Origin: Amphiscolops sp. MND2022
Lineage: Eukaryota
Direction of reading: 5' to 3'
Length of the DNA stretch: 64,000 nt
NCBI GenBank assembly: GCA_964187785.1
Contig: OZ076411.1
Span: 73,842,001 to 73,906,000 of the forward strand
Within the stretch, counting starts at the first letter, position 1, and each line of letters begins with the position of its first letter. The notes under the pieces were generated by a model. That model was not told where the DNA came from. It searched no databases and worked only from the letters and a program-made list of their open reading frames with translations. Made by a program: the position numbers and the translations under genes. Of this stretch, positions 12,734 through 35,062 are shown in pieces.

Positions 12734-13407
12734 TGTAACGTCTATCATGAGGCGTTTATACTAGAGCTGGGACAATGCCCAGGTTGCTTTGACAGGAGAC
12801 CATAGTTTTAATACAAGCCTAGACATCAGCTTTTCACCCAAAAGTGGTCTCCTAGGACGTGGCTCCGAGGAGACGTGCCGGCACACTCAAAGTCCAGACA
12901 AGCACGTAAAAACTTGTTTCTAACGTGAGACTGCCTACATACTTCCGAGGCTTGAAAACGGCAATCAGCTAAAGTACATTATATTAGGTAAATGCAGTGC
13001 AAATAGGGGATCTAACAGATGAAACAACATCATACACCGGCAATTGTTATTAATTAATCACAATACACGCTAAGAAAACATCTAAAACAGTCTTAGCGGG
13101 TTTTGGGTCTGTGGAACAGTCCGTAAAAAGTTGTATTTTTCTTCTGAGATCCGAGAGTGTCCCTATTTCCTGGATTTGTCTTAAAAACTCTCCAACTGGA
13201 TAACTCAGTGTGGAATGACGCAACACTGGGTGTTTTAGGGCTTTTCTGGTGCTTCGGGTGTGCACTATTCTTTTTCTCGTTTCTCCCTGAACCGTTTTCT
13301 TGCCTGATTTTTGGGCAGCTGAAGGTCGGTCATTTCATCTTTGTACGGTAGTTAAACGTTCTTTTTTAAAAACTTCAAACAGTGCCACCAAACTGGTGGA
13401 CGTTACA
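12734..13407 (-). mobile_element. Solo LTR (674 bp) related to the LTR of the giant Gypsy element
   Basis: Ends tgtaacgtc...gacgttaca (perfect 9-bp IR). Shares blocks gacaggagaccatagt, ggtctcctagg, gacgtgccggcacactcaaagtcc, cctacatacttccgagg and actggtggac with the LTRs at 15929 and 34349. Flanks gcca/ctac are not a TSD. Confidence 0.85.
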
Positions 13408-15928: not shown

Positions 15929-16642
15929 TGTAACGTCAAGCAAGTAACGCACATACCAGAACTGGGACAGTACTTAGATTGCCTAGACAGGAGACCATAG
16001 TCCTATAACAAGCCTAAATACTAGTTTTTCATCCCTAAAGGTCTCCTAGGGACTTTTCCAAAACACCGTGGAGACTCCTCTTATTAGAGCTCCGTGGCGA
16101 CGTGCCGGCACACTCAAAGTCCGGACACATCCCACAAGCGTGTAAAAACGTTCCTAAGGACTTCCTGCGGTCCTACATACTTCCGAGGTCCGAAAACAGG
16201 GTTCTAGCTGAAATGCATTCTATTTCAGAAAATAACGTCTAAATACTCCATCACAAGGATCTGTCAGATCCGACATCATCAAAAATCTGTAAATCAATAC
16301 TAATGACATCAGAATCAATCAAGATGGGCATTTCTGGCATGTTTCTATTGAATTCGCGATTATCTTCATCTTCTTCGCTGTGGGACATCTGGATCTCAGA
16401 ACGTTTTCGTATTAAAAACGCATTTTTCTGGGGAGATGACACAAATCCGAGCATTTTTCTTGTTCTTCCACATCGTGTCAGTGTCTTTTCTTCTTTTTTG
16501 GGTCTGGGTGGGGTTTTTCTGTCTTTTTTTGCTTCCTTTTTGGTTTCAACGACCTGCCAGGTCGGCCATTTTGATTCGCACACTTTCTGGTTCTTGATCG
16601 AATTTTTCATCGAAAATTTGGTGCTGACTGGTGGACATTACA
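15929..16642 (-). repeat. 3' LTR of the giant Gypsy element
   Basis: tgtaacgtc...gacattaca; 710/714 identical to 34349-35062 (substitutions at 15989, 16168, 16252, 16503; no indels). YY1-like CAAAATGGCCG on minus at about 16563-16573. Confidence 0.98.
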
Positions 16643-16650
16643 TCCTCCCC
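16643..16650 (-). promoter_or_regulatory. Polypurine tract
   Basis: Minus strand ggggagga directly abuts the 3' LTR start tgtaatg. Confidence 0.75.
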
Positions 16651-17219
16651 GGGCCACTGTTTGTCGTCCTCGGCAAACGGAGAAGGATGCATCACCACTT
16701 ACAAATGGTTTTAGCAACGTGATTTTCAGTTTTTCTCTTAGATTTTACTGCTTCAAAATTTCGATTTAGCACTTTTCATTTTAGCACTTTTTGATCATCC
16801 TGGGACAATAAAAATCAGTTTGTTTAAAAACTCTTACCATTCTTTCCAAGCTAGTTTAAAAGTTCTTTTAAGTGTGGTTGCACTTTTGCGACACTTAGCC
16901 AGAGAAGCGGAGAAGTTTTTACTAAAGCTTTAATTGCACTTGTTTTGGCAGTTAGGCAGGCACCAAGCTGGGACCTACCCACCGGGTAGTTATATTAGCA
17001 AAACAATCAAAATAATGTTAATACTTTGTTAACTAAAATAGCACTTATTGTTTTGATAACTGCTGAGGCGTAATACGTTTTTGGTTAGTTTGGTTTGATT
17101 AGCCAAGTTCAGTACTTGTTTCATTCATGGCCAGTGTCATCCATAGTAGTATCGTCATCTTGCAGCACTTCATTTAATGATACGGCCAATACTTCCGATG
17201 GCGGCAGGTCTTGCTGATT

Positions 17220-20200
17220 CTAGCTAGGTAGTTCATTCAACTCTAATTCGATATCGGCTGCTAGTGTTCTCGTCAACGACGTGGGCGTGACTTCCAAAGC
17301 TTCTAGCGGCACTGTCTGATCATTTGAAAAAGCATTGGTGGTGATGACTGTGGTTGGGTTAGCTGTTTCAGGGTCATGGATGGATACATCGGTGTTGGTT
17401 GTTGTTGCAGCTATTGCAATGCTGATTTGACTTGAGGTTGACATCATGGAAGTTGATGTATTTTCAGCAGTAGAAGCCTCCTCGTGCCCTGCTGCCTGTC
17501 TCATTGAGGTCGAGCCCGCTGGGCTTAGTTCTGGCAGCTGGTCTGCGAGGTCTTGGCGTCCATATCGGAAAAATATTTCTTTGAAAGTTCCAATTGCATT
17601 TAAATAACTGTCATATACGGTATTTCCTTTGTCCCTCTGCTTGGCTATCAGACTCATGAAGATTTCCATGGCCATTTGTGGATTGTTCGGCATCTCTTCA
17701 TTCAGGGGCAAGGTCTTTCTATTGGGTTCTCTTGCGATTTTCGGAACTGTCGCTTTCAGAGTTTGAAATCCTTGGTAGATCATTCTGTCCACTATCGGCG
17801 GGTCTGCCCAATGCGTAGTGTCGGACAGGATTTTGGCTGTATCGGCTTGCGGTGTCACTCGAGGGTTGTACATTCGGGATACATCTTGTATTACTCGATG
17901 CTGTAGTCTTTCTGGAGCCTTTTCTTCGTCCACCCAGGCGTCGTTCCGCATTGGTTAGTACTCGGAGAATACCTGGCTCATCCCAGCTGGCAAAGCCTTG
18001 CAATGCTCCAGTGCTGGGTTCTATAGGAGCGTGCAACCATTCTACTAAATGAAGTTCTAGCGACATAGCAACAGCGCACCGCGCTCTGGCTCGGATCAGG
18101 GCACTGAAATTGTACTCGACCTGTTTCTTGTCTTTAATAATCGTGTATGCCATTGGTGGTCGGAAGTTGGCAAAGTTGAGCACTAGCATTTGAAAATCCG
18201 GTTGTCTGGCGTCGTCTTCAGGGTCCACAAAATGTAGAATGGATAGTGTAGGTGCTTTTGCGGCAACTCTAAGCGGCTGTGTAGGGTATCTCATTGCCAT
18301 CATTGAACCGAATATAGGCCAGACTATGGGTGCGATCATGGGGACTAGATCTTCAGTTTCTACCAACATGAGGCTGGCTATTTGCGAGGGGAATAGGAAA
18401 CCTGGCAGGTTATTGCTGTTGGGTTTTTGACTTAGCGAGTCGTCTAAAGTGCTCATCACACCAGAGACATTGACCCAGGCTGAGTAAACCCAAGCCAATA
18501 GTGTTTCGATATTCTCGGCGAGCTGGGCGCGCAACTTCAAAGCGCCTGCAGGGTCCAAAGTGTTTAGAATGGCGTTAATCCAATTCTGCTGGTTCTTGGC
18601 GAATATGAGAAAATTGAGTAGACAGGAGTTGGCTTTAGCTAGGATCAATCTCTGCACCAGGTGCACTGGGCCTTTGTAGACGGCGCCTAGACCAACGGCC
18701 ATCAGGTATGCCAGGCTTTCAGCAATTGTGGCCCTCTGCATTGCTTCTACATACAGTCTAACTTGCTGCTCATCTAAGCTGCTTTCACGCTGCACCATCG
18801 TTGGTACCCAAAATGGCGAGATATTATACAAGAATATGGGGAAAGGAATTCCATGGCTTTCTGCTGTTTCATTCAAGGTCACCTGCAGCGTCTCATGCCA
18901 AGATTGGTAAGTATGCTGTGGGTTCATTCGGTTTTCTTGCGCTGTCTTCTGGGCTAATACTGTCAACAATACCAGGGTGGGGGAAACCATGTTGGGCTTT
19001 GCGTCGATCGCTTGTATCGCCACTGGAAAAACGGTCGCGTCGGTCCGAGTTTGTTTTATTCCTTCTGTCTTCTTGAAGAGAGCTAGCAGCTCTTTGTGGA
19101 ATTTACCGTTGTGCGTCTCTCATTTAGCGTTGACTCGTCTCTCCTTTCAAACCATCCGTTGTCAATCATCTTTGCCCGTTCGTTTTCATTAGGTTCCTTG
19201 ACTCGGCGTACCCCATTCTCATCAAAGGTGCGATGCGCCATTTGCATGTCAAAGTCAAAGGCAGTAGCATCATCGGCCAGTAACTGAGAGTTTCCCTCGT
19301 ATCCGGTACAAGCCTGCAAGGCTTTTGAGATTTCCGCCAAGAGTGCAGAATAAGAGTTTTCGCCCGGACGCCAGGTTGTGGCACTCACTCTCAGGTTCGG
19401 TGCTATTATGTAAAATGACAAATTCTGTGAGTAGGATGCTTCTGATATTAGATATAACAGTTGCTGGAGTGGTTTAGGTAAGTGTACGTATCCCGGGGGC
19501 GACATAAAGACTACCCCTACGACGGGCTTCATTCGCTGCACCCGCCTGATCACATTTCTCATTGCTTCGACGTACGCAATTACCTCTCCTGTCATCACTT
19601 CTTCCGTCAGTCTACGGTTGCCTCCTTCAAAGTATTTCAGCGTTCCTCGAAGAGCCAAGTGGTCAATCATGTTGCTATATATCAGGATCGGAGGGAATGG
19701 AATTGTCTCTGTGTGGTTGACGGTGGGACCGAAGACCTTGCAGGTCACCTCGGCCATTTCCACTAGCGATGTGCAGGGCAAGTTCATCACGCGAACATCC
19801 ATCAGGGTGTTGTTCATGTTCGCCGTTGCTTTCATCGTGGAGTCCATGAACAAGGCAATCCTTGTCTTTTGCAACATCTCTTTGCCCATGGGGAGCAAGG
19901 TTGTTATGTCCCTCATGAAATCACGGCTTCTCATCAGTTGGTCATCGTATCTTGCCGGTCGTTGAATGGCTAATTTTACTTTGGAGGGGAGTGGTCTCAC
20001 AAATGATGACTTGTCTTTATGAAGATTCTCCCTTACTCTCTCGAACCAGGGAGGAATGCGGTCCAGAAGGAGTGTTGGCTTCTTTACGGGCCTCAAGTAA
20101 TGCACTCCAATCGTTGCCTTTTCGAGGTTTTCCACATCCTCTGGGCTTCCTTTGCTGGTAGCTGTTTCGAATTTCTGCACATCCAATCCTGAGTCTGGAT

Positions 20201-21354
20201 TCTCTGATTTCGCTTCTCGCTGCAGACGCACCGCGTCTCTGGCAGCAATGTCAAGCTGTCTTGCCTCTGTCTGCGATAGGAGCTCCTTAGAGAATCGCAC
20301 TCGCCTAGGCTCCGGCTGTTGCACTGGGGAAGGATTCGGGCTGGAGTTCGTTGCATCCGAGTTGGCTAAGTCTCTGGCCCTCTTCTTTTGAACTAGCTGT
20401 TCGATCTTGCTTTGTTCCTTTCGATTCAATACGTCACGGAGATCGATAGGGGCCTTGGCTGCTTGCCTTTCTGCTAATTCTTGCTGTTTCTGTTGTTCTT
20501 GGCGTTCTGGGTCGGCCTGAAAACCTATTAGGTGATGTGGGTCCTGCGACGTTGAAAGTAGCAAGGCATCGTAAGAGTCTTGAAATCCGATCATATCTGT
20601 CATGATGGGCACGTCGAGCGGGTTCCGCATCATTATGGTTCTCGGTCTTTGTCTTGTATTTTGGGTGGCATCTTCATCGTTCTGCGCGCTCGTGTGCGCT
20701 TCTTCTACCCCTTCCCCCCTGAAAGAAGAAAGGATCATGAGTTTGTTGTTCTCTTCCAGGCGCCTGACACTAATTGGGGCGGATGATGGTGGGAGCGTCA
20801 ATAGTGGCGGAGGCACTGTTGGCAAAAGGCATGCGAATTGCTGTGTGGGTGGTGGTTGCGTTGATTGACAGTCGCGGGCGATCTCAGGGGCAGTTATCGA
20901 CGATATTGCAGGTGCTTGCGTCAGGTTCGTTTGAAGACGTCGTTGCTGCTCCATGGGAGGCCTATTAGGCTCACCATATCTCAGGTGCGATCTGTGGTCA
21001 TCAAAATGGTGGGTGAGATCGTGACCTTGTCACGCGCCATTGTGGAATTCCGCAGTTCTGCGGTAAGATCCAATTCCAATTGATATGGAGAGGGTGAAGT
21101 CCGGATGTATTTCGAGAGATTGCATTTGAGCAATTAGTATGGCCATCCCGGTCACCAGTGATGGAGAAGGGGCCTCTTGTAGGGTGGATTGGACCAGACC
21201 AAGCTGGTCAATTCTGGTTTGAGATTCTTCGACAGGCAGCGAGGACACGGGAGATTCTTGCGTGGCAATCGTCGGCTGTTGTGATTGCTGCTGGTGCTCG
21301 GTTGCGAGCTTGTTTTTGATGGAACTGGCATGCGGGTTTTAGCCGATTGATCCA
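17220..21354 (-). CDS. ORF2 of the Gypsy element (env position), ~1,350 aa when repaired: low-complexity N-terminus, SGNH-like domain, unassigned helical domain, Ser/Thr-rich tail
   Basis: Track ORFs 19083..20954, 17719..19023 and 17220..17951 overlap and join by single frameshifts at about 19115 (..STLNE/..KFHKELLALFKK..) and about 17950 (..GILRVLT/PMRNDAW..). Upstream piece 21030..21248 is in frame with 19083..20954 across one TGA. The N-terminal frame and the start (ATG 21354, MDQSAK) are uncertain. Confidence 0.7.
19315..19860 (-). other. SGNH/GDSL-hydrolase-like domain within ORF2 (degenerate)
   Basis: Block pattern IALFMDST (GDS-like block I), RVMNLPCTSL (block II), ILIYSNMIDH (GxND-like block III), VVFMSPPG, and WRP where DxxHP is expected. 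Pattern recognition only. Confidence 0.6.
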
Positions 21355-21460
21355 TTAAAGAGATAAGTAGCGCCTTGGATAAATGACTATGGTGGATATA
21401 CCGCAAATGTGATGATATATGACTGGCTGCGTCAAGTGCATGGGAATTGACAGGACTGAA

Positions 21461-21488
21461 CTAGAAAAAGGAAAACAACAGACGTCAA
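21461..21488 (-). promoter_or_regulatory. 3' splice acceptor upstream of ORF2
   Basis: Minus strand ttgac (branch-like, 21488-21484) gtc tgttgttttcctttttctag| in the ORF1-ORF2 gap, about 105 nt before ATG 21354. Confidence 0.6.
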
Positions 21489-21663
21489 TTTGAGCTAAAA
21501 TATTATTGCTGATGAGTGCAATTGATATGATAAACATTAAAAGACAATAAGATAAAACAGATTCGACAATTCACGTTAAAACCTAGTTCAGGAATTGACC
21601 CAAACAACACATATGCTAAGAACAGGACGAGTGGCCTCCCTTATTTTTTTGTACCACAGTGAT

Positions 21664-22798
21664 TCAGTCAAATTTGTATTTTACATGGTTATGGTGTGTC
21701 CTCACTAACGCAATTGATACAAACACCCTATCATGGAGGATTATGTCGATATTGGAATCAATGAAATGATCTTTCAACATTGAATACCAAGCTGGTAGCA
21801 TGTTGATTGATCTTTCAGGGTCATGGATGGGAAAATAGATACGGGTGATTTGTGCTCGTGTGAGATTCTGCACCAGGTCTATTAGGCACAGATGTAGCAC
21901 ATCATGTAAAATGGGGGTGTTTACTAGAGGTTCTGGTGATTAACAGGAACATTTCGTTATTCCACGGCGTTGCGGGTGATCTAGTGAGGTGAATAGCCTT
22001 TCCTACGGCTGGGCGTAGTCGGAAAATTTCCTCCTGGCCATATTCCCTGATGACGTAGCGCGCCATTGCTGAATATGACAGAAGATCTGCCGGACAGCAT
22101 ATTACTACGGTACCCCTGGCTTGCAAGATGTCAGTTTCTTCGTAATGAATCCACGATAGATAGTTCGGTTTGATCTTCGGATGCGTTATCAATAGTTTTC
22201 CCGTGACTGTGCTTTGATTGTCTTGACTTGGTGTGAGATGATCCAGAATGGCCTTACGGTCTTGCCACACTGTTCTGCGTAAAGGTCTGTCTCCCAAGTT
22301 CGTGCAAGACCAATCGTGAACTACGGAGAGTGCTTCCAGCACGGTCATTGGGTTCTCGAAGGTATACGTGTGTTTGTCTAACAGGCGTATTTTGGCTTGG
22401 CGACAAAAGATGATAGCTAGGAGTAGTAACCAATGTTGACTGAGGAATTTCCCACGATAAATATCTGCTAGATGGAAGCATAAGGTGTCCTCGAACTCTA
22501 CAAGCGTACGCAAATTTTCCAAGCAAATCAGTAGAATTCCTGGAGTCACTAGTGATGTCTCGTCCAAAGAGGTGACCAATAGCCACCAACCAGCCGTTGG
22601 GTGATACACATCTCCAGGAGGGGAGGTTACACCATATTGCTGCCAAAGTCTTCGCGCGGTGATACAGCGGACCATTGCTATTCGTGTGTCACTTGGTTCT
22701 ATTTTGCCAAACATCATCGATGGTGGTAGTGGGGGTATGATTGCGGTCAACGTGAATTCTATTCCACTCTTCTCGTGCCATGTCCATTCCTTAAATCG
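21664..22798 (-). CDS. C-terminal extension of pol: two tandem TARG1/OARD1 (Poa1p-like) macrodomain-like repeats
   Basis: In frame with pol across one TAA (22799-22801). Repeat 1 about 22790-22376 (GDVY..WWLLVT..TPGILLICLENL..LCFHL..G..L..W..L..IF..IRL). Repeat 2 about 22156-21730 (YEETDIL..VVICCPADL..MA..I.REYG..G.AI..FLLITR..KHPILHDVLHLCL..ITRIYFP..W..ML..F..IDIIL). An extra base in the G5 run at 21913-21917 splits repeat 2. Confidence 0.72.
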
Positions 22799-25700
22799 TT
22801 AGGTGGGGCAGTCTGATGGAGATGTTTCTTGCATGGCTTTTAGTGTGGTTTCCAGGGGTGGGACCACGGCTGGTCCAATGCTCGAGTAGGTCTTTTCCAC
22901 GGTAATCACAACGTGATGTACTTGCGGAACCTCTTGGTCCTTGGCTTGTATGTTTCGGATGTATTGCATGTGGTCTTCCGTTGTTTCAGTAACAGCTGTG
23001 TCTGGGGCAGGAGCGTCTACTCCCCGGGCCAATCGCTTGTTCGGTGGTTTTCCACTAATTAGGTTGACGAAACTACAGTTACGGGAACCACATGTTCCGC
23101 AGCGATATCTAGGAGTTCTATTGCGTCGCAGCAAATAGGGTGGTGCTCGTGAGGTTGTTGTTTGTTCCGCTTCTGATTGCTCTGATGGTAAACTTTCTGC
23201 AATGTTGGGTAGCGTCATTGCACGTTCCAGGGTTTGAGATTGTGCTCTAGTTCGCAATCTGCCTCTCGATCTGGTGTACGGTTGGTGCGTGCTTGCAAGT
23301 GCTTTGCTTGATGAGTTGGCACTTCCTCTTCTACGATTTGGAGGTCTACCTCTTGGCCTGCCTCTTCTACTCGCGGTTCTCCCCGATGATGGCGATGCTT
23401 CCATGCTGTGTCTGGGTTCTGGAATTTCTCTGTCAGTTCTTTCTTGGGGTTCGGGTTCCTCGATAGTTTGTAGTCCTGCCGAGCTACCAGCTCGAGAACT
23501 GAATAGTGGAAAATTGTTCAATGTGTCGGTTAAAGCTGGGTTCGAGAGCAGTGGTGCTGATGTTTCTGATGGCGAAGGTATCAGACTTGGTGTTGGTTCT
23601 GGCCTGACTTCCTCTTGATCTGAATACAGTGGTTCCAAATCATCGATATCAGGATAGATCATTGGATGTTGTGGCTCTTCAATGGGTTGATCCATTTGTT
23701 CTTGGTCGGATTCCGACTCAGAGGGGTATCCAAAATGACTGAATCGTCTTCGAGGGATTCCTCGTTCTAGAGCAGACTGAGTGCGTGTTTGAATCGTGCT
23801 CGGGGGAACGGGCGCGGTCGGTTCCATCTCGAATGATGCTTCTGGCAGTTGTTCTGGAAGAAATGAGTCACGTGATATGTCTGACGTTATCTCCTCATTA
23901 CTTTCCTCCACGTATGGGTCTGCGATGATGGCAACATTCTGGTCTAACCCAAAGGGTTGATGTGCCGCCCAATCCCACGGCGCGGGCACATGCTTCTTCA
24001 GGCGTTCGAAGTGGACCTTTTGTCCTGTATCCAAAACGTATAATCTTCCATCTTGTAATACATCTGTGACCTTGTGAGGTCCACGCCAGGCACGAAGGAG
24101 TTTGCGGGTTCCACCTTTAGGAATTATGTGGCAGAAAACCCAAACAGCATCACCCACCGCGTGAGTTTTTGCTTTCAAATGCTTGTCGAACTTCTGTTTT
24201 TGTCGTATTTGCGCCTGGTGTGTGTTTCGGCGAACAAGTTCGTGGATTTCTCGTTGTCGAGCAAGTAGGTGCTCCACAAATTCTTCTTTGGACTCAAACT
24301 CTCGCGCTGCGAATTCTGGGTATATAAACGAGAGTGGAATGGATTTTTCTGCGCCATGTTGGAGCATATACGGGGAAAATCCGGTCGTTGCATGTCTGGT
24401 AGAATTATAGGCACCCAAGACTCCGTCTATGTGTTCATCCCAGTCAAGCATTCTTCGAGACGTATAGACTCGGAGCAAGGTCAGTAATGTTCGGTTTTGA
24501 CGTTCCACTAAACCATTGCCTCTCGGATGAGCTGGAGTAGACGTTATTTTGGTTACTTGCGAAGCTTTCATCAGTTCTTGAGCAATCTCATCAGTAAAGT
24601 TGGTGGCATTGTCCGATTGCATCCTGGCAGGAGTGCCGTGTCTTGCAAACCATTTGTTCAAGATAATCTTTGCAGTCGTCTGGGCGTCATATTCGTCGTG
24701 TGCACATGGGATTGCCTCTGCAAATTTAGTGAAATCGTCGATGATGACTAGCAATCCATTATTTCCTGACGTTGTTTTGCACAACTTCAAATGATCGAAC
24801 TGCACCAGGTCATTAAAATTGCTGCTGTTGATACTTTGTAACGGATAACAGGGATTCCCAGCGGGATGTTTCGTTTGTTGGCATGTTAAGCAGTGCTTAA
24901 TATGATTGACAACATCACGCTTGATGCCTGGCCAAGTGTGGCGCTCCTGGATTCTTGCCAACACTTTACCAACGCCTAGGTGTCCTGACTCGTCATGCGC
25001 TCTGTACAAGATTTCGTGTTGGTATAGTTGGGGCAAGACGATCATACACGGTCGTATGTGCATCGCACGTTGCTGCGGAATGTAGTTGACACACAAGATA
25101 TCATTCTGATTCAGGAACAGTAAGTCTTTCTTCTGGTGAAAGTATCGTTTGGCAAAGTCTTGCACGTCTTCGGGAAACAACGTATCCTCTAATGGCTTGT
25201 TCTTCATGAGTTTCTTCAGCGCTAGCAGATGTACATCTCTGTTTTGAGCTAGATGAAGATCTTTCAATCCGCGCATTGTTGACTGATGCTCGTGAAGCTC
25301 AGTTCCGACTAGCCTGAGGACGTCAGCTTGTTCCTGACACTGCGTAGGCAATCTACGCAGTGCTGGGTCACGTTGGGTGGTGTCCAGACGTGCCGCCGGC
25401 ATTTTGGTCGTTACGCTAAGGATACAATTCGGTCTGTCGTCTTCGGTCGAAGTCGGAGTTGTTTCCCATTGCACCTGTGGGTACCATGGTACGGAATTCA
25501 GGGACGGGTCTGAGGTTAGATCTTTTTTTGGTGGCTTTTTCAAAATGAACAGCACTGGAAGTTGTGCTCGAGCTTCCGGTGGAAGCTCTGGATGGTTTGG
25601 GATAAATTTTCCATGTTTGTCGATATAGGGCACAGTGGGGAGTTCTTCGTAGTCTTTCTGGGGCATGAAGCTGAATCCCTTGCTCACTTCTGAAAGAGTT

Positions 25701-27121
25701 TCCACAATCTTCTCCCGATGTACGTAGTCATTGGTCCTTTTGCTAAAACCATCCACATTTCTATGTTGTGTGCGCGGTCTGTGGATCGTCTTGAAATGAT
25801 ATTGGTCGAGGCGCGCAATCCAGCGTCCAATCATGGCTTGATCCATTGAATATGTCTTCAGCCACGAGAGAGCCTGGTTATCCACGCGCAGCGTGAATTC
25901 CCGACCTGCAAGGTAGGAATGAAATTTCTCAATGAAATAGAATACTGCATACATTTCCAGCTTCGGGGCGCCATATTTCATTTGTGTTTTAGTCAGTGAC
26001 TTGCTGCCATAGACAATAGGACGAAGAATGGTTTTGCCATTGTATTGTTGCTCTTGGTGCAGTATGCCGGCTATAACAACTGCACTGGCATCCGTGTCTA
26101 GAACGAAACGTCCTTCTTCGTTAGGCGCTGCCAAAGCTGTGGCATCAACCAATGCCTGCTTTACTGCATCGAACGCTTCTTGGTGTCCTTCTTTCCAGTA
26201 GAAGTGTTGGTTCTTCTTTAACAACTCCTGCATAGGTTGCACCTTAGCAGCATGAAAAGGAATGAAATCTCGGTAGTAGTTCGCAAATCCAAGGAAGCTC
26301 TGTAATTCTTCTCTGTTTCTGGGGGGCATCCATTCCTGGATTTTGCTGACAGCAGCCGGGTCAGGCTTTATGCCTTCGGCCGAGACTACTCTTCCAAGGT
26401 ACTTGGTTTCCGTGCGCATGAAGTCACATTTCTCTGCTCGCATCCTGAAACCTGCCTCTCTGAGACACCCGAACACTTCTCTAATTCTTTCCAAGTGGTC
26501 TTCAATGGTTTGTGTCGCAATCACTATGTCATCTATGTATGCCATGACAACGCTTCCATGTCGTTGTTGGATCTTCTGTAGAACCCTCGTGATCGATCGC
26601 TGAAAGGTGGCCGATGCATTGCATAGCCCGAAGGGCATGCGCCGCCATTCGAACAGGCCAAGTTCACACGCGAACGCCGTTTTTCTGGGATCACGCTTCT
26701 TCAGTGGAATTAACGCCAAATCGATGCTCGTGAAGATCTTTGCATTCCCAATCCTCGAGAGGCTTTCATCGATTCTGGGTAGTGGAAATGCGTCCTTCAC
26801 TGTTACATCATTTAGCGGGCGGAAGTCACAGCAAAAGCGAAGCTCGCCTGATTTCTTTTTCACCATGACGATGCCACTGGCCCACGGAGAGAAGGAGGGT
26901 TGTATCAGACCAAGGGCCAGCAAATTTTGCACTTCCTGATCGGCTTTCGCCGCCTTATCAGGGGACATCCGCCTAGCTCCTTCTCGGTGAGGTATAGCCT
27001 CCGGCTCTAGCTCTATCTTGTGCTTTGCAACCTTACACCTACCTATGTCAGACTTATTTTTCATGAAAAGGTCTTCACACTCATTTAATATAGTTTCTAA
27101 CTTCTTTCTCGCTTCTTTCCC
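22799..27121 (-). CDS. pol: Pol: reverse transcriptase, RNase H, integrase, then a Ser/Pro/Arg-rich linker
   Basis: RT: DFRPLN..DAFPLPRID, MPFGLCNA, YIDD (26528-26539). RNase H: LDTDAS, LEMYAV, VDNQAL. Integrase: H..H..C..C, VQFDHL, QSDNATNF, NGLVERQN, GPHKV. In frame with the upstream ORF across a TGA (27122-27124). RT motif reads IDLA-LIPL instead of the usual DLxxxFWQIPL, implying a short in-frame deletion at about 26712. Confidence 0.97.
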   Translation of the reverse strand, partial: GKEARKKLETILNECEDLFMKNKSDIGRCKVAKHKIELEPEAIPHREGARRMSPDKAAKADQEVQNLLALGLIQPSFSPWASGIVMVKKKSGELRFCCDFRPLNDVTVKDAFPLPRIDESLSRIGNAKIFTSIDLALIPLKKRDPRKTAFACELGLFEWRRMPFGLCNASATFQRSITRVLQKIQQRHGSVVMAYIDDIVIATQTIEDHLERIREVFGCLREAGFRMRAEKCDFMRTETKYLGRVVSAEGIKPDPAAVSKIQEWMPPRNREELQSFLGFANYYRDFIPFHAAKVQPMQELLKKNQHFYWKEGHQEAFDAVKQALVDATALAAPNEEGRFVLDTDASAVVIAGILHQEQQYNGKTILRPIVYGSKSLTKTQMKYGAPKLEMYAVFYFIEKFHSYLAGREFTLRVDNQALSWLKTYSMDQAMIGRWIARLDQYHFKTIHRPRTQHRNVDGFSKRTNDYVHREKIVETLSEVSKGFSFMPQKDYEELPTVPYIDKHGKFIPNHPELPPEARAQLPVLFILKKPPKKDLTSDPSLNSVPWYPQVQWETTPTSTEDDRPNCILSVTTKMPAARLDTTQRDPALRRLPTQCQEQADVLRLVGTELHEHQSTMRGLKDLHLAQNRDVHLLALKKLMKNKPLEDTLFPEDVQDFAKRYFHQKKDLLFLNQNDILCVNYIPQQRAMHIRPCMIVLPQLYQHEILYRAHDESGHLGVGKVLARIQERHTWPGIKRDVVNHIKHCLTCQQTKHPAGNPCYPLQSINSSNFNDLVQFDHLKLCKTTSGNNGLLVIIDDFTKFAEAIPCAHDEYDAQTTAKIILNKWFARHGTPARMQSDNATNFTDEIAQELMKASQVTKITSTPAHPRGNGLVERQNRTLLTLLRVYTSRRMLDWDEHIDGVLGAYNSTRHATTGFSPYMLQHGAEKSIPLSFIYPEFAAREFESKEEFVEHLLARQREIHELVRRNTHQAQIRQKQKFDKHLKAKTHAVGDAVWVFCHIIPKGGTRKLLRAWRGPHKVTDVLQDGRLYVLDTGQKVHFERLKKHVPAPWDWAAHQPFGLDQNVAIIADPYVEESNEEITSDISRDSFLPEQLPEASFEMEPTAPVPPSTIQTRTQSALERGIPRRRFSHFGYPSESESDQEQMDQPIEEPQHPMIYPDIDDLEPLYSDQEEVRPEPTPSLIPSPSETSAPLLSNPALTDTLNNFPLFSSRAGSSAGLQTIEEPEPQERTDREIPEPRHSMEASPSSGRTASRRGRPRGRPPNRRRGSANSSSKALASTHQPYTRSRGRLRTRAQSQTLERAMTLPNIAESLPSEQSEAEQTTTSRAPPYLLRRNRTPRYRCGTCGSRNCSFVNLISGKPPNKRLARGVDAPAPDTAVTETTEDHMQYIRNIQAKDQEVPQVHHVVITVEKTYSSIGPAVVPPLETTLKAMQETSPSDCPT

Positions 27122-29839
27122 TCATGGAGAAAGGACGGAAGAGAGGTCAGGGCCTGGGATTGCTTTTAGCAGCTGTGGATCTGTCCTTTTGCGCTTTTCA
27201 TTATCTGATAAACCTGCCTCAGACGGTTCGGTCGACGATAAAAAGTTTTGGGCAAAGGAACTGAATTCTGAACTGGTGTCCATATCAAAGTTTCTATGTA
27301 TTTGATTTACATATTCGGCAGAAAGCTTCGAAGCTTCACCTTCAGTTTGCATAAGAACAGAGTTCAATACAAAAGTGGTAAGCGCCGCTTTGCCAATAAC
27401 AGTTTGTGCTTTGATTTTCACCCGTTCTTTATCAGTTTGGTTTCGGATGGCCAAAAATACTATACCTCCTTCTCCCACAGAAGTTAGTGTATCTTCTGAA
27501 ACAAAAACTGAACTGGACTTTATGCTACATGAGTGGACCGTTACATTACGAAACAGGAAAGTGTCAGGTTGTTGCGTGATGATTTTCGCGCGCACAATCT
27601 TCCTTTCGAATGGACCTAGTATTACATCTTCCGTGGAAACTACAAACGATGGTTCGTTGTCGCTTACCTCATGAGTGGCTTTAAAGATTCGAGGTGTTTT
27701 GGGGTCACGGATAGTCACTTTCATTGCTGTCAGGTCCACCAACACGTTGTATGTGCGCAAGAAATTGCGACCCAGGAGGGAATCCTCTGACCCAATATGA
27801 TCGGCTATGACTACAAAGTTGGTCTTCAGAGTGTATCCGCCGAGCTGAAAGTTTACATCTTCGGCTATACCCACGGTGGTGATGCTTTTGCCATTGGCAG
27901 CGAAGAGTTCAACGTCATATGGTGACAGGCTCAGCATGTGCTGGGAAGCAATCTTCTTGTACGCACTCAATGAAAGGATGGAAACTCCTGAACCGGTGTC
28001 AATCATGCCGAAAAGTGGTATCGGCTTTTGCAGAGGAGTTCCGAATGCTACTACTAGCGAGGCTCGCTCATCAATCTGGGCCTCTCCTTGTGCATCTTGC
28101 ACTCCAATGCTATAACAACGCAATTCCTGCCTGCCCAGATATAGGCCTTGCGGAAAGTGTCCTTCCAGGACAACAATCGCATCAAACCTCATGTCCACAC
28201 CATCAACTGTGATCGCTACGGGGACTGGCGCGATTGTCTTCACTCTCTGTATCTGGGCCAGCTTGGTCTCATCATTCCTGGTAAAGTGGGGTAGTGGTCG
28301 CGAAGCTATCGTCAAACTGGTAATGCGGCACAGTTCTTCTTTCAATTGTGCTAATGTGAGATTTGGACGCGCCTTTTGTTCCGCGGATAACAACAGATGG
28401 ATGGATATTAGTGTTTCAGTACAGTCAGGCGCTGGTGCCTCAAGTGTCGTCAAGATTTGTTTCTCACCACAAGTTACAACCACAGGGCGTGATGGGCCTC
28501 CGTCTTCTGAAGTCGAGATCACCCTTATTTGATCCTCTGAATCGCAAAAGTCTGTTGAGTTTGCGACCGGGGCGTACCATGCCGCTTTTACTTGTTCCTC
28601 CGTTGCAACATTGTGAGGCGTCATACAATCAGATGCCACGTGGCCTACATGACCACAATTAATACAAAATGCTGATGTTCCTTGTTCTGGTAGGGTTGCG
28701 AGCATTAAGTCATCATTCATGCCGCGTGGGTTCGATGGGCACACCCATTCTCCAGCTGTGTTCGTGCGACACGAATTAACTATTTGCTGTACTGGTTTCC
28801 GTGCTCGGTCTTTCAAAGGACAATCAGCTGCAAAGTGTGAAGGATCTCCACAGTTGAAGCATGTTCGCTGCGGTTGTTGTCGGAAAGCTGGAGGCTGCTG
28901 CTGGAGTTGCTGGGCGTTGGGCGCTTGAGGGGCTTGTGCCTGTGCTTGGTTTTGCGGGTTCGCTGCGACAGGCGGCTGTTGTTGTTGTTGTGGTGCAAGA
29001 TAAATTTCCGAACGTGTCGAACCACGCATACGCAGGTATTGTTGTACCGTGAATCGTAAGGCCTCCACAGTTGGGGGTGTGTCCACATACTGTTCCTGTG
29101 CATACATGAGTGCAAGGTTTCGTTTCAGCTCATAGCTTCGTACCCCTTCGATGAAATTCTGCATGATTTCATAGCGCCTCACCGCAACTTCCTCGTTGGG
29201 AAAACCTTGGCTGCGCAAACCTTCCAATGCGTCAAGGTATTGCATGTAGTCTTCATCCGGGGACTGATTACGTGTACGGAACTGTTGTTGTATTTGGATC
29301 TTATTAGATCCTGTTCCAAATCTTCGTGCTAGCAGCGCGAAGACTTTTTCATCAGTATCGCGTTCCGCTTCTGATTTATTCGTAATATAGTCTCGTGCTT
29401 CATTTTCTAGGAACTCCACAATGGTCCATGCTCTGTCTAAAGGAGTGTCTTTTGCATGGGCTTTTTCCAGGTAACGCCTCATCAGCATTAGCCAGCCATC
29501 CACTATTCCATCGCGTGTGCCACGATACTTGGTAGGTTTGTTCTTGGATTCTTTGGCTGCTAATAATGGCTCCAGACCTTTGGACATCGCGGTGGTTATT
29601 GCTTCCGCCAATGCTTGGCTGTGTATAGCGTTCGGAGCATTGTCCTTGTCCTTGGCAGCTCCTTCCACCGTTCCAGTGTTCAGGTTCCTTCTCGAGATTG
29701 TCTTTCTTTGCGTGCTAGAGGCCAATGGCCGTAATTGGTCGTTACTATGGGGTAACATTGAGCGTTTTGTGCCAAGCATTGACGAAACAGCAGTTTGATA
29801 TTCGGTATTTCCCGATGCTGTTTTCATGTTACTATGCAT
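27122..29839 (-). CDS. gag: Gag (capsid, two CCHC knuckles), pseudo-protease, aspartic protease and dUTPase-like segment
   Basis: Capsid-like YRGTRDG..W..(~29540-29015); CFNCGDPSHFAADC (28861-28820) and CINCGHVGHVASDC (28666-28625); MIDTGSGVS with Asp at 27998-28000 and LLGRNFL; STEDVILGPFERKIVRA..LAIRNQT..VKIKAQTVIG (27649-27380). Confidence 0.93.
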   Translation of the reverse strand: MHSNMKTASGNTEYQTAVSSMLGTKRSMLPHSNDQLRPLASSTQRKTISRRNLNTGTVEGAAKDKDNAPNAIHSQALAEAITTAMSKGLEPLLAAKESKNKPTKYRGTRDGIVDGWLMLMRRYLEKAHAKDTPLDRAWTIVEFLENEARDYITNKSEAERDTDEKVFALLARRFGTGSNKIQIQQQFRTRNQSPDEDYMQYLDALEGLRSQGFPNEEVAVRRYEIMQNFIEGVRSYELKRNLALMYAQEQYVDTPPTVEALRFTVQQYLRMRGSTRSEIYLAPQQQQQPPVAANPQNQAQAQAPQAPNAQQLQQQPPAFRQQPQRTCFNCGDPSHFAADCPLKDRARKPVQQIVNSCRTNTAGEWVCPSNPRGMNDDLMLATLPEQGTSAFCINCGHVGHVASDCMTPHNVATEEQVKAAWYAPVANSTDFCDSEDQIRVISTSEDGGPSRPVVVTCGEKQILTTLEAPAPDCTETLISIHLLLSAEQKARPNLTLAQLKEELCRITSLTIASRPLPHFTRNDETKLAQIQRVKTIAPVPVAITVDGVDMRFDAIVVLEGHFPQGLYLGRQELRCYSIGVQDAQGEAQIDERASLVVAFGTPLQKPIPLFGMIDTGSGVSILSLSAYKKIASQHMLSLSPYDVELFAANGKSITTVGIAEDVNFQLGGYTLKTNFVVIADHIGSEDSLLGRNFLRTYNVLVDLTAMKVTIRDPKTPRIFKATHEVSDNEPSFVVSTEDVILGPFERKIVRAKIITQQPDTFLFRNVTVHSCSIKSSSVFVSEDTLTSVGEGGIVFLAIRNQTDKERVKIKAQTVIGKAALTTFVLNSVLMQTEGEASKLSAEYVNQIHRNFDMDTSSEFSSFAQNFLSSTEPSEAGLSDNEKRKRTDPQLLKAIPGPDLSSVLSP

Positions 29840-31257
29840 TTGGTCGCTGGCCGCCGAGTAATAATCTCAGTCGTTGAGGCACCTCTAGCATATGGGTCGA
29901 ATGGAGGAGGGCCTGATATATCACAGCGCTGTACTTCAGTTTGAGTGGTTGTTGACAACTGGGTTTTCATCGGCACCTGCTTGTACGCTGCGGGTGGTTG
30001 TAACTTTGGCTGTTTTGTCTGATCCGGTTTCATCACACATTGGCGTTTGGCAACTTCGCGATAGGAGGGGTGCTGACTAGGAAACGCACTCGTAGATGGT
30101 ATGTCGGCAGAGTTTGGTGCCACCGGCACGGGTGAGGGACGGTTTGGTATCGTCGCCACTACGGTCTTCACCCCTAGGGTTAAATCCTGGACCGTAGTCA
30201 TGAGGTCCACCATGCGATTGTCGACATCTAAATCTCTGTGGTGCATCATTTCGGACATGTGTTTTAGGCGCTCATCCGCTTGCCGATCTCTTTGCACCAT
30301 TATTGCCGTCATCTCCGATATACGTTTTTCCGTCAGGTCCTTGACTGATGCCACGGACGTTTCTATCTTGCCCTGGTTGACTCGTCCTTCCATCTTGATC
30401 TCATTCACCTCCTTTCGTAACTCTTCTACTTCCATCACCAAAACTTCTGCCCGACGGACATGGTCAGTGTTTTCCTGGGCTAACTTTACTTGGACTCGTT
30501 TCAATTGTTCCATACTACGTCCAAAATCTTCTCGTATGGCTTCAGTTTCTTTGATACCTCTGGCGATCGTCGAATTTGGGGATGCTGCATTGCCGGCATC
30601 GGAATGTTGGGGCGTTGCCGTGCGTTCCAGTCGTAAGGTGCTGGGACCCAACAATGGCGGTGTAGTGGAGGCATAGTTCTGGAGAGTCACTCCTTTCCTG
30701 GTCTTCCGCTTTCCCGGCTGACTTTCCGAAGGAGCTATCGCGGTGTCACCCAGTGTATTTCCATTGCTATCAAACACTGGTACTCCGGAACCCAGCGGGC
30801 CCGCATTCGTGCCCAGGTGAGGGGTGATTTCTCCCAAAGTCATGCCCACATTCATATTCTCAACCCACTTACTGATATCCGAGCTAGTAGCTACCTCTCT
30901 ATTCGAGTTCGGCCAGTCCCCGGTAACAATCACGGAAGTGTTCAGAGGAGGCCATACGTTGGTATGGTTCATGGGAGTCTCATTAGCTAGTTCGGTGCTA
31001 TCAAAGGACATCTTGGAGGAATTTGCTTGGCTCGTACGCGCAATTTGCGAATTTTGCTCAATGTTAGACACGTTATCTGACATTACGTCGTCTAAAAACA
31101 GGTCGGCGATCATATCTAGCGGTGCTATTTCAGCTTGTGTACTCAGGGTATGCAACTCTTCTATGTTGTTCGCGAACGGGTTGGTAGCATGAAATTCACT
31201 AGACTCCAATGATGTCTCACTCACGAATAACAAATATTCCCACTCACTCAAACTCAT
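29824..31257 (-). CDS. N-terminal Gag extension with long coiled coil; joins the downstream gag ORF by a frameshift
   Basis: Track ORF 29824..31269, first ATG at 31257. Heptad-rich stretch EAIREDF...MTTVQDL. Adding one base at about 29860 gives ..STTE-DYYSAASDQMHS.. continuous with 27122..29839. Confidence 0.75.
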   Translation of the reverse strand: MSLSEWEYLLFVSETSLESSEFHATNPFANNIEELHTLSTQAEIAPLDMIADLFLDDVMSDNVSNIEQNSQIARTSQANSSKMSFDSTELANETPMNHTNVWPPLNTSVIVTGDWPNSNREVATSSDISKWVENMNVGMTLGEITPHLGTNAGPLGSGVPVFDSNGNTLGDTAIAPSESQPGKRKTRKGVTLQNYASTTPPLLGPSTLRLERTATPQHSDAGNAASPNSTIARGIKETEAIREDFGRSMEQLKRVQVKLAQENTDHVRRAEVLVMEVEELRKEVNEIKMEGRVNQGKIETSVASVKDLTEKRISEMTAIMVQRDRQADERLKHMSEMMHHRDLDVDNRMVDLMTTVQDLTLGVKTVVATIPNRPSPVPVAPNSADIPSTSAFPSQHPSYREVAKRQCVMKPDQTKQPKLQPPAAYKQVPMKTQLSTTTQTEVQRCDISGPPPFDPYARGASTTEIITRRPATKCIVT

Positions 31258-34200
31258 TTTTACTTGCACAATTTTTGTAGCTCAACCAAATTAAATTTTC
31301 TTTCGTCTTTCACTCACTCCTTCTCTTCAACAAATTGAATTAAAGGCAACTCAAAATGGAAGTTTTGATATCCCTTTCTCAGATATTCTAACTAAATTGT
31401 CGTACTATTAAGTTCTGGAGTTTGTAGCTCGTGATCGCCCTCTTGATTCTATTTCGAAATCAGCTGACTGTCATAGGCTTCACACTCCTAATTACATGCA
31501 CTAACTCAAGATTACATGCACTGGTGTTAGTCACCACTAATCAGAACAGAAATGTTTGTATCCCCACTATTTGGAGATTATTATTCTACACAAATTCAAA
31601 GTTAAGCTTTTTAAGTTTTTTTTACAGTTACTCACACTAAACTATGCTTTATCCAGCCACAGGCTATGTGGTCGGGATAACTAAAGGTTTTGACGCGCTA
31701 TCAGAACTTTGCAGAGATTTATTCAAGAAATCACCGCGTTTTTCTTCTGGGAGCGTACACTATGTCACTCATACTGACTTTCAATAGGAGAGAACCTGGG
31801 GTATTGCTACAACAAGGGGTGTCGGGAACTAGACTTTGGGGGTGAGTAGGTGTTAGGACACTTTCAAACAAGAGAGTTATCGTAATCTGATCGTAGCACG
31901 ATCAATGGAAACGCAGTTCTTTACAATTTCGAATGCTACTATACTCAATTTTCTGTCTCGAGACGCACCGCGTCCCTATCCACTTCTCCTAGAGAACTCC
32001 TAATCGCGTTTTAGCTCTCTCGCGTCACTTCTCAGTCTAGGCAAACGTGAATACACCTGTCAGTTCGCACTTGGGTGACCCTGGTGGCCGTTGGGAGAGA
32101 AAATACAATTTTTGTGTTTTGCACTCCTATGTCTCGTAGACAGCTTTTTGACAAACCCAAGATTTTAGGGTTGAGCTAGCTCCATTCTGATTACTTCAAT
32201 GGGACGTGCTTTGGATGTCTGGTGTAGAATTAAGGTCGCTTAGACGTTCGCTTGCAACTACACCTACGAAAAGTGTATAATTTTTCGCAAAATTTCTCAA
32301 AATCGGCAATTCTTTAGCCAAAGTGCACGCCTGTGGAAGGTGAAAATCACTTCTAGAGCTGCTAGCGACCTGAAAAATTAACACGGTATACTACTGTGAC
32401 CAAATCGTGGGAAAATCACCACCGATTGCGCCAAAATTGATTATACGTGACTTGGGGTCGCTTCAGAATGTTGTTTGAAGAATCGCCTATGTTGTGAAAT
32501 TTACAAAAGTCTGTCAAACTCGCCTTCTAGGCTTCCTAGCTACCTGAATCTTTGTATGCGAGCGTGAATTATGCCCACGTAACAGAAAAACAAAATAGCG
32601 AGGTGCCCAGGTCAATATTCCGCAATCCGAGTTGACAAAACTATGATGTACCCTATTAGTCACTTTCTGGGGCCAAAATTCACAAAAATGTCAATTTCTC
32701 CAAATTAGGCAGTAGCAAGCTGCTCAAAATGCACAAATCGTCGGGATCTAGTGCAGTGTGTACGAAAATGCAAGAATTTTAGTGCTGGGATACTCCGAAG
32801 GTATTGCACTATGCTCAACTAAAATTCGATTTTTTTAACATTTCCACACGATTTTTGAGCAAAACTGCGGCTAAGATTTCTCAATCACCAGTAGTGGTAG
32901 CACTACGAAAATTACACCACTAACGTAACTTTTTGTGGTCTACACGATGGTGCAATCCGTTTTGAGCTACTCCTACGAGGAGAGATTTCGACCTATCTTG
33001 GGGACACTACTCCAGTGTTCCGAAAATGTCGCAAAAACAACGCGTTTTCGGCTATTTCTCAGCAACTACTGGTTGGAATTACTCGCGGTTTTCTGCGTTT
33101 GCAACGTTATTCCCTATGCTAACGGAAAAAAGGCGAGCGAAACCTGGCAGGTTCCAAATAAGGTCTCTCAAAATAACTTTCATTTTGCACCTTTGACACT
33201 CTGGGAACAATGTGAAAAATACGTATTTTCCCTAGGAACTTTTTATTTCTCGGTTCCCAGATGTTCGGGATGGTTCTAACAGTACGGTAGACAGGTGTGA
33301 CAACTTTATTTAGGGGAGTGGGGTTATTTCAATTATTACTTTTGATGTTATTACTCTCAGGTCTATGGGGTCCTCTACTCAGGTCTATGTATATCAAAGA
33401 AAATCAGAAGTTAAAGTGTCAATTTATATTGGGGAATGCTAAAACTCGTCTTGGCAGTAGTGTTTCGTACTACCAAGCTTGGGAACAGCGTTTTTGGGCT
33501 GATCTTAAAGCTTGGGAACAAGTGCCCAAGGCTTCGCCCTCACCAATTTTAGTCTTTTAGGCCAAAATTGATGTTTTCTCTATAAAAATCGCTAATTTTC
33601 TCAATGTTTCAACAATTTAGCCCAGCAAATTTTTCTGTTCCTGACCTAGCAGGTCTGATGGAACGTTTTTTTTTGTATTCCCACTGGCCGTATCCTTTTC
33701 CACTAGATTTCAACTTTCAACACCTCAAAAACCGGTGTTTGAGCTATATATGGTGTTATTTTCAAGGTTTTCGCGCTCAAATTTTTAATCAACTGGTCTA
33801 AACACCCACAGGGTATTTTCCCCAGTTGATTTTCGTGGGAACAGGCCTGGGAAAATGCTTTTTGGGCCGATTATTAGCAAGAATTAGCAATATAACCCAA
33901 TTGAAGTGGGTATACGGCAACTACAGGGGTGCTGGAGGTGTGATGTCGGAGGTGCTCACACACTGTCGTCAGCTAATTGGGGCCTTCAGCACTCGTCCTC
34001 CCGGTCCCCATACATTGCTAATTTACTGAAACGGAGCTACAAAACCCTTTATAACTAGTTCCGGATAGGCCGGATTAACATTTTCAACAGGTATTATCAA
34101 AATACAAGGGGTGCACTGTCTGAAATCGTCGATTTTCGGTTTCAGACCTCGGAAATACGCAGGACACGCAGGAAAAACACTAGTACAAGGCCCACGGGGC

Positions 34201-34348: not shown

Positions 34349-35062
34349 TGTAACGTCAAGCAAGTAACGCACATACCAGAACTGGGACAGTACTTAGATT
34401 GCCTAGACTGGAGACCATAGTCCTATAACAAGCCTAAATACTAGTTTTTCATCCCTAAAGGTCTCCTAGGGACTTTTCCAAAACACCGTGGAGACTCCTC
34501 TTATTAGAGCTCCGTGGCGACGTGCCGGCACACTCAAAGTCCGGACACATCCCACAAGCGTGTAAAAACGTTCCTAAGGACTTCCTGTGGTCCTACATAC
34601 TTCCGAGGTCCGAAAACAGGGTTCTAGCTGAAATGCATTCTATTTCAGAAAATAACGTCTAAATACTCCATTACAAGGATCTGTCAGATCCGACATCATC
34701 AAAAATCTGTAAATCAATACTAATGACATCAGAATCAATCAAGATGGGCATTTCTGGCATGTTTCTATTGAATTCGCGATTATCTTCATCTTCTTCGCTG
34801 TGGGACATCTGGATCTCAGAACGTTTTCGTATTAAAAACGCATTTTTCTGGGGAGATGACACAAATCCGAGCATTTTTCTTGTTCTTCCACATCGTGTCA
34901 GTGTCTTTTCTTCTTTTTTGGGACTGGGTGGGGTTTTTCTGTCTTTTTTTGCTTCCTTTTTGGTTTCAACGACCTGCCAGGTCGGCCATTTTGATTCGCA
35001 CACTTTCTGGTTCTTGATCGAATTTTTCATCGAAAATTTGGTGCTGACTGGTGGACATTACA
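34349..35062 (-). repeat. 5' LTR of the giant Gypsy element
   Basis: 714 bp, 99.4% identical to 15929-16642, followed by TSD GGAT. Confidence 0.98.

Follow-up and report, generated by a model that had tools for sequence, protein, structure and literature searches.

The macrodomain is a three-layer alpha/beta/alpha fold with a mixed beta-sheet at its centre, which cells and RNA viruses alike employ to read ADP-ribose marks or to take them off. Macrodomains are a hallmark of the conflicts between hosts and RNA viruses over ADP-ribosylation (PMC7232374, PMC10221186), and those of RNA-virus replicases counter PARP-dependent defence (PMC7232374). Tandem macrodomains with one catalytic member or none recur in the macroPARPs and in coronaviruses (PMC10221186). 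The ALC1-like class, which includes TARG1/OARD1 (C6orf130), DarG, SCO6735 and ALC1, is mechanistically diverse: TARG1 uses a catalytic dyad of Lys84 and Asp125 and DarG uses Lys80, and members of the class can work without the TARG1 dyad, SCO6735 being an active hydrolase with Gln at the Lys84 position (PMC9411070). Among reverse-transcribing elements, some epsilon-like endogenous retroviruses of fish have a macro domain in an ORF of its own, according to Basta et al. 2009 as cited in PMC4977317. Where a chromodomain sits at the integrase C-terminus, it directs integration, in the account of Gao et al. 2008 cited in PMC9289625. LTR retrotransposons are considered to fix additional protein domains only rarely, and every such case has been informative about the interaction between host and element (PMC9289625).

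Here we describe a Ty3/gypsy-like LTR retroelement whose polyprotein ends, behind the integrase, in a tandem module resembling TARG1. It lies in a stretch of 64,000 nucleotides of DNA from Amphiscolops sp. MND2022, the whole of which is called the window below. In the literature we found no report of a macrodomain fused to the Pol or integrase of an LTR retrotransposon. The fish epsilon-like retroviruses provide a precedent for the capture of a macrodomain by reverse-transcribing elements, but theirs are separate accessory ORFs recognised by standard domain models, whereas the present module is a diverged in-frame tandem on a Ty3/gypsy-like Pol and is invisible to Pfam. RNA-virus replicases (coronavirus nsp3 Mac1-3 including the SARS-unique domain, alphavirus nsP3, rubella virus and hepatitis E virus) likewise place the macro fold in the polyprotein of a selfish replicator. 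These viruses are cytoplasmic RNA replicators whose first macrodomain has retained its activity along with the Gly-rich loops; the retroelement, in contrast, reverse-transcribes and integrates, and its module follows the integrase. Tandem arrays with degenerate, non-catalytic members are a further likeness (PMC10221186, PMC2674928). MacroPARPs (PARP9/14/15) also have tandem macrodomains, but the element has no PARP catalytic domain, and our model of the module does not define how its two domains are oriented to each other. Chromovirus (Ty3/gypsy) chromodomains offer a functional analogy in position and logic, as host-captured reader-type domains at the extreme C-terminus of Pol; their fold is unrelated, and the ligand and targeting demonstrated for them are hypotheses for the module.

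Results

A complete LTR retroelement with an extended Pol

The window contains a complete 19.1-kb Ty3/gypsy-like LTR retroelement on the minus strand at positions 15929-35062 (19,134 bp). Its 5' LTR (34349..35062) and 3' LTR (15929..16642), both on the minus strand, are 714 bp long with TG...CA ends, and blastn of the two element ends found them 99.4% identical, with 4 differences. A 4-bp target-site duplication, GGAT, flanks the element at 15925-15928 and 35063-35066. On the minus strand, a tRNA-primer-binding-like site (TGGCGCCCC...) follows the 5' LTR at 34315-34332, and a purine-rich tract (GGGGAGGA) lies just before the 3' LTR at 16643-16650. The G+C content of the element is 0.45-0.49, compared with 0.31-0.40 in the flanking DNA. 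No Rfam family was matched in the window.

Pfam identified the core domains in two ORFs, both on the minus strand. The Gag-protease ORF (27122..29839) matched zf-CCHC and gag-asp_proteas, with zinc knuckles at about 28817-28867 and the aspartic protease at about 27704-28069. The 1421-aa Pol ORF (22799..27064) matched RVT_1, RT_RNaseH(_2), Integrase_H2C2 and rve, which place the RT at 26393-26863, RNase H at 25799-26197, the integrase zinc domain at 24866-25033 and the integrase core at 24395-24814. The order Gag zinc knuckle, aspartic protease, RT, RNase H, integrase is that of Ty3/gypsy-like elements (Metaviridae), and the relatives share it. No chromodomain was matched by Pfam in the 1421-aa Pol or in the module, and the element is thus not classed as a chromovirus. 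After the integrase core, the Pol ORF continues as a low-complexity linker to about 22928, spanning the roughly 490 residues between the core and the module. An Arg-rich stretch of this linker contains a Cys motif, C-G-T-C-G-x-R-N-C (23075..23101, minus strand), which is conserved between element lineages whose modules are only about 40% identical.

An upstream ORF of 481 aa (29824..31269, minus strand) has no family match. It corresponds to the N-terminal part of the single giant ORF of intact relatives, since tblastn placed residues 1-413 of one of them, P0307, at 31257-30019. The same comparison revealed a frame change between 30019 and 29731 and an in-frame stop at 27122-27124, which closes the Gag-protease ORF and is absent from intact relatives.

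Layout and lesions of the module

The last roughly 420 codons of the polyprotein, on the minus strand, form two macro-fold domains. The strongly derived N-terminal domain (22379..22927), supported by AlphaFold2 (AF2), Foldseek and hhalign, carries the motifs RCITA, WWLLVT and D-x-Y-R-G-K. A conserved inter-domain extension of a strand and helices (22205..22378), with invariant W, R, W and D positions, leads to a C-terminal macrodomain of the TARG1/ALC1-like class (21718..22180), supported by Foldseek and by profile comparison with the PDB, with the motifs TD-LQ, CCPADL, SA--RY, LLITR, D-P-E-R and LHDRV-VSIA. A short tail (21664..21717) ends at the natural stop of the polyprotein, a TGA at 21664-21666, and intact relatives have the same tail.

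In the window copy, Pol is interrupted by an in-frame TAA at 22796-22798, beyond which 297 further codons remain open in the same frame. A frame change within the homopolymer run 21913-21917, in the C-terminal domain, is followed by about 80 codons to the TGA. A preliminary description, made from the letters of the window, had reported both lesions, and both are real. It had begun the module at 22798; that region does hold the module, but the start lies about 130 nt upstream, near 22927 in the tail of the Pol ORF. Adding 42 residues upstream of the TAA raised the model of the N-terminal domain from poorly confident to a pTM of 0.80. The window copy is recently inserted but dead, given its stops and frame changes relative to the single ORF of intact relatives. 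We left its breaks unrepaired: each piece entered the searches by itself or with X at the joins, and models were built from natural intact relatives.

We also considered programmed read-through of the TAA and a separate ORF3, and rejected both. In-frame stops occur at differing positions between copies, one relative (P0097) is open across the position of the stop in locus L006, and intact relatives have no stop there. The TAA at 22796-22798, moreover, falls inside the folded N-terminal domain.

Structure prediction and profile searches point to the macro fold

We used AF2 to model the module from residues 140-514 of P0001, an intact relative 93% identical to the window copy, with a 30-sequence alignment. 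The model had an overall pLDDT of 74, with most of the C-terminal half at 86-98; its pTM was 0.47. Like the other models, which used 28-30 sequences, it rests on a shallow alignment drawn entirely from the retroelement family itself. When the P0001 model was compared with the PDB by Foldseek, the eight best matches were all TARG1/C6orf130 (E 5e-10 to 1e-8), with TM 0.74-0.84 and an rmsd of 2.2 Å over 144 columns. The C-terminal domain matched TARG1 at TM 0.80-0.84, with an E of 5e-10. DarG, enzymes designed on a macrodomain scaffold, alphavirus macrodomains, Poa1p and macroH2A followed. Altogether there were 179 matches at E<=1e-3, the best 50 of which were dominated by macrodomains, and structures of PARP14 macro 1-2 (4d86, 3vfq) were among the matches covering both halves. 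Against predicted viral structures (BFVD), the named matches were macrodomain-bearing replicases and phage macro proteins, with many rows unnamed; no retroviral protein was among them.

The start of the N-terminal domain was poorly defined in the first model. Remodelled with the 42 upstream residues, the domain reached a pLDDT of 83.5, and TARG1 was again its top PDB match by Foldseek (E 1e-3, TM 0.51-0.58), followed by DarG, alphavirus macrodomains and Poa1p. The N-terminal domain is thus predicted to fold as a heavily remodelled macrodomain, to which strands and a helical extension have been added and in which loop 1 is shortened.

Sequence profiles led to the same protein. A profile of 30 family members matched only OARD1/TARG1 in the PDB (E 0.0027-0.0035; five deposited sequences of one protein) over profile positions 260-357, with a core free of internal gaps, and the profile of the C-terminal domain alone matched OARD1/TARG1 again (E 0.02). 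The L-I-T-[K/R] strand and the spacing of the next helix, strand and loop align with TARG1 without gaps. TARG1 nonetheless differs in being only 16-18% identical to the module and in standing alone, whereas the module is tandem, fused to a polyprotein and without a Pfam macro match. No macro family was found in Pfam, NCBIfam or PHROGs at E<=10 with the window pieces, five family members or each of 23 C-terminal-domain sequences. Single-sequence phmmer against the PDB returned nothing relevant, and a profile of the first half of the C-terminal domain had no PDB match, loop 1 not being alignable to TARG1. From these results we conclude with high confidence that the module has the macro fold and is homologous to macrodomains. 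The C-terminal domain is a well-preserved macrodomain of the TARG1/ALC1 class, and the module represents a family of the macro fold missed by current domain libraries. The preliminary description, which had recognised tandem TARG1-like domains from motifs and had looked to structure prediction for a macrodomain fold, is borne out in both domains.

The two domains are related to each other

We compared the two halves of the module by hhalign, which aligned them over 71 columns with an E of 2e-6, a probability of 89% and a score of 43.9. One reversed and 22 column-shuffled controls scored at most 18.1, with an E no better than 0.05. In the alignment, WWLLVT[S/A] of the N-terminal domain pairs with LLITRA of the C-terminal domain, CLE-LRT with CL--L, and D-x-Y-R-G-K with D-P-E-R-S. 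These results indicate that the two domains very probably arose by internal tandem duplication. The part of the N-terminal domain that aligns is its second half. The first halves reached an E of 0.1, which is not significant, and the best register there was RCITA(D) with CCPAD, which would mean that loop 1 of the N-terminal domain has lost about nine residues. The pairing of N-termini proposed earlier (WTWHEK..TAIIPP with WIHYEE..TVVICCP) was therefore not recovered. Because D-x-x-R in the loop that replaces the glycine loop is common to both repeats, the replacement probably predates the duplication.

The module is fused to Pol and under purifying selection

With the 297-aa piece as query, a word-indexed search returned 195 proteins and an exhaustive HMMER search 200 cluster representatives. 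The homologues all came from unannotated ENA assemblies, those of the relatives being ERZ25074608, ERZ25067548 and ERZ23498686, and none carried a Pfam domain; no annotated protein belongs to the module family. A scan of JGI metagenomes with a seven-sequence alignment matched one 1-kb contig. The module lineages stand at about 85-93%, 62-69%, 39-44% and 30% identity, and the element families carrying the module number from hundreds to more than a thousand copies.

At seven of eight loci, the module lies directly downstream of RT and RNase H in a similar element, the eighth being a 1.3-kb contig with the module gene alone. In all six loci from ERZ25074608, the integrase is also upstream of the module. 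P0265 (1980 aa) encodes protease, RT, RNase H, integrase and the whole module in a single uninterrupted ORF, and the same layout was found in about 40 proteins of roughly 2998-3114 aa and in the diverged P0328 (2175 aa; a cluster of 1094 members). Dozens of intact relatives were seen in which one ORF of 2,000-3,100 residues includes the linker and both domains. The fusion behind the integrase that had been proposed for the broken window copy is thus found uninterrupted in its relatives.

We next estimated selection from pairs of copies. Comparing the window or L001 with L003 over 360 codons gave a dN/dS of about 0.10 for the module at a dS of about 0.72, with 0.07-0.09 for the N-terminal domain, 0.07-0.10 for the connecting helices and 0.11-0.12 for the C-terminal domain. 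In the same pairs, the ratio was 0.27 for the linker tail just before the module, 0.03 for RT, 0.02-0.03 for the integrase core and 0.08-0.10 for RNase H. Deeper pairs had a pN of 0.2-0.3, with pS saturated at 0.8-0.9. The closest pair, the window and L001, gave a higher ratio of 0.42, as expected where part of the divergence came after insertion. The module is therefore under purifying selection, at a level similar to RNase H, and is fused with Pol in one ORF. The same selection has kept it in several element lineages only 30-40% identical to one another, and the preliminary description's check for purifying selection came out in its favour.

Catalytic residues are replaced, and candidate pocket positions are conserved

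In the HMMER alignment, TARG1 Lys84 falls on the family Arg of L-L-I-T-R, and a chain-to-UniProt offset of 6 fits both Lys84 and Asp125. Of 24 aligned sequences, 22 have Arg at this position, and the other two have Lys (P0198) and Asn. In the N-terminal domain, hhalign places Ala or Ser at the equivalent position. Asp125 pairs with Ser/Pro, although shifting the register by one to four residues would bring in an acidic residue, and the TARG1 loop G-C-G-L-D125 corresponds to D-[PAT]-E-R-[S/P] in the family. The candidate loop 1, between the strand at 228-234 and the helix at 242-251 of the model, reads P-A-D-L-x-x-x-S-A and contains no glycine. The YSAMA stretch that the preliminary description had listed among the replacements did not align to TARG1 with any of the tools applied. 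The replacement of catalytic residues noticed from the window copy alone thus extends to the family.

In the C-terminal domain, near-invariance marks T-D-x-L-Q, which follows the first long strand, C-P-A-D-L...S-A, which precedes helix 1, and the motifs I-T-R and D-x-E-R. Mapped by sequence register and general knowledge of macrodomain structures rather than by superposition, the most conserved residues appear to occupy the positions of the macrodomain ligand loops, so that the module likely has a functional cleft. In macrodomains, the Gly-rich loop normally holds the diphosphate. Hydrolysis by the TARG1 mechanism is most likely absent, because the Lys84/Asp125 dyad and this loop are replaced by the near-invariant Arg and D-x-E-R. 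The module is, on this register, probably not a canonical TARG1-type hydrolase.

Discussion

Overall, our tentative best explanation is that the duplicated macro module at the end of Gag-Pol is a non-catalytic binding reader that works with the integrase. The ligand of its pocket would be an ADP-ribose-related mark, another nucleotide-like mark or a partner from the host. Carried on a long flexible linker behind the integrase, the module could act as a tether for the integration complex and thereby bias target choice, in the way that the chromodomains of chromoviruses do. We favour a partnership with the integrase because of the long linker and because the module occupies the same place as the targeting chromodomain of chromoviruses; the tethering role itself, drawn from this analogy, is a possibility we offer with reserve. 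Its place at the end of Pol would also fit a module that the protease sets free as a separate protein, unlinked to integration.

A more specific version of the reader holds that, in a large and recently active LTR-retroelement lineage, a captured macrodomain of the TARG1 class became a duplicated reader of ADP-ribosylated chromatin, or of an ADP-ribose-derived signal, on the integrase end. It would direct integration towards sites marked by PARPs, DNA breaks among them, or weaken host control of the element by ADP-ribosylation. We regard this as doubtful. Acidic residues in the candidate diphosphate loop argue against ADP-ribose itself as the ligand. The preliminary description had proposed an ADP-ribose-reading or decoy module with a non-canonical active site at the integrase end, serving counter-defence or the targeting of PARylated or damaged chromatin; the fold, the selection and the fusion hold, whereas D-x-E-R argues against canonical ADP-ribose binding. 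If an ADP-ribose reader does sit on the integrase, it would be the first link of ADP-ribose signalling to the integration of LTR retrotransposons or to defence against them. More broadly, a selected tandem macro module behind an integrase suggests that ADP-ribose signalling may have a part in how this host controls retroelements or in their choice of targets; alternatively, the macro fold may have been re-tooled for a new ligand.

The pocket might instead have no small ligand, leaving the two domains as a protein-protein or assembly module that serves multimerisation of Pol or integrase, packaging into particles, or the binding of a host factor by a different surface. This would fit the apparent loss of both glycine-rich loops, the heavy remodelling of the N-terminal domain (TM only 0.5-0.58), the absence of any HMM-library match and the acidic to neutral character that both domains have in most lineages (net charge 0 to -12 and pI 4.3-6.5 per domain). 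We consider such a relic unlikely, however, as conservation, judged from the register, seems concentrated at the canonical pocket positions and not spread over the surface.

It is also unlikely that the module is an active eraser, in which the C-terminal domain, as an ADP-ribosyl hydrolase of a mechanism other than that of TARG1, would strip element proteins, RNA or cDNA of the ADP-ribose that host PARPs or other transferases had attached. Such counter-defence would resemble that of the coronavirus, alphavirus and hepatitis E virus macrodomains. Arg is unable to form the proposed Schiff-base intermediate of Lys84, Asp125 has no equivalent, and the Gly-rich phosphate loop has become D-x-E-R. 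Moreover, tandem macrodomains commonly lose activity (PMC10221186). On the other side, the closest structures, TARG1 and DarG, belong to hydrolases whose substrates include nucleic acids, viral macrodomains oppose antiviral ADP-ribosylation (PMC7232374), and the diversity of the ALC1-like class extends to SCO6735, which is active without the Lys or Asp (PMC9411070). Arg or Lys is kept at the Lys84 position, and the Lys of P0198, together with the active SCO6735 with its Gln, suggests that catalysis by the module may be possible.

Binding of nucleic acid, as by the two macrodomains of the SARS-unique domain, would help Pol to hold element RNA, cDNA or target DNA. There, tandem degenerate macrodomains of a viral replicase bind G-quadruplexes instead of ADP-ribose (PMC2674928), while TARG1 and DarG act on DNA-linked ADP-ribose (PMC9411070). 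The Arg-rich stretch and Cys motif just upstream of the module would fit as well, but the charge and pI of the domains in most lineages are unfavourable for binding a polyanion, and we hold this reading to be improbable. Chance resemblance, or loose motifs in the decayed 3' part of a dead element, might be suggested by the stop and frame change of the window copy and by the lack of a Pfam, NCBIfam or PHROGs match, but is refuted by the hundreds of open copies, the dN/dS of 0.10, the confident models whose top matches are exclusively macrodomains, and an internal repeat far above shuffled controls.

The other ORFs of the element were examined for a partner of the module. Neither the upstream ORF nor the downstream ORF had a family or PDB match, and an ADP-ribosyltransferase or PARP partner elsewhere in the element was rejected on this basis. 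The downstream ORF also has no signal-peptide, transmembrane or Cys-rich features typical of an envelope protein. It lies on the minus strand at 17220..20954, where the window copy is broken into three fragments of 623, 434 and 243 aa, and forms one ORF of 1,250-1,500 aa in related elements.

Coding regions around the macrodomain module

In the linker that separates the integrase from the module of two tandem macro-fold domains ending the Pol polyprotein, an Arg-rich stretch is followed by a C-G-T-C-G-x-R-N-C-x-C motif (window 23075-23101, minus strand). Both features are common to lineages whose modules are only ~40% identical, including the related proteins P0003, P0021 and P0097. The Cys motif, whose last Cys is replaced by Phe in the window copy, possibly forms a small zinc-binding knuckle.

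The related copy L006 contains three long ORFs in one frame, with single stop codons between them (L006:4516-11835). These correspond to the Pol tail (483 codons), the macro module (449 codons) and the large downstream ORF (1506 codons). The stop preceding the module is specific to this copy, since P0097 reads through its position.

Upstream of Gag, the element carries a 481-amino acid ORF without a family match (window 29824-31269, minus strand). Its counterpart in intact relatives is the N-terminal part of a Gag-Pol ORF of ~3,000 amino acids, represented by residues 1-413 of the single-ORF relative P0307.

Downstream of the polyprotein lies a large ORF, which is broken into three fragments in the window copy (window 17220-20954, minus strand) and spans 1,250-1,500 amino acids in related loci (L004:7661-11485, L005:8122-11868 and L006:7318-11835). 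Pfam and PDB sequence searches with this ORF returned no match. The ORF is poor in Cys and in N-glycosylation sites, and neither a signal peptide nor a membrane anchor is clearly present, so that it does not resemble a typical envelope gene.

Terminal sequences and other repeats

A primer-binding-like site, TGGCGCCCCACAAGGGAC, was located at window 34315-34332 on the minus strand, 16 nt from the 5′ LTR instead of immediately adjoining it. About 3 kb outside the element, a 106-nt segment (window 12734-12839) shares 73-74% identity with the start of the element's LTRs and may represent the remains of a related LTR.

Elsewhere in the window, a block of ~1.87 kb is repeated in tandem, the two copies being 97% identical across 300 nt or more, and a third copy, partial and more diverged, lies ~5.4 kb upstream. 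The matching segments are 45551-45850 and 47422-47721; 41428-41596, 46853-47021 and 48724-48892; and 47310-47414 and 49133-49237. A perfect tandem duplication of 157 nt occupies window 57417-57731. Short dispersed repeats built on CCAAAGGGTCCCCCC...GCGACAGAATG were found at window 53660-53747 and 59855-60058, possibly representing a small non-autonomous element.
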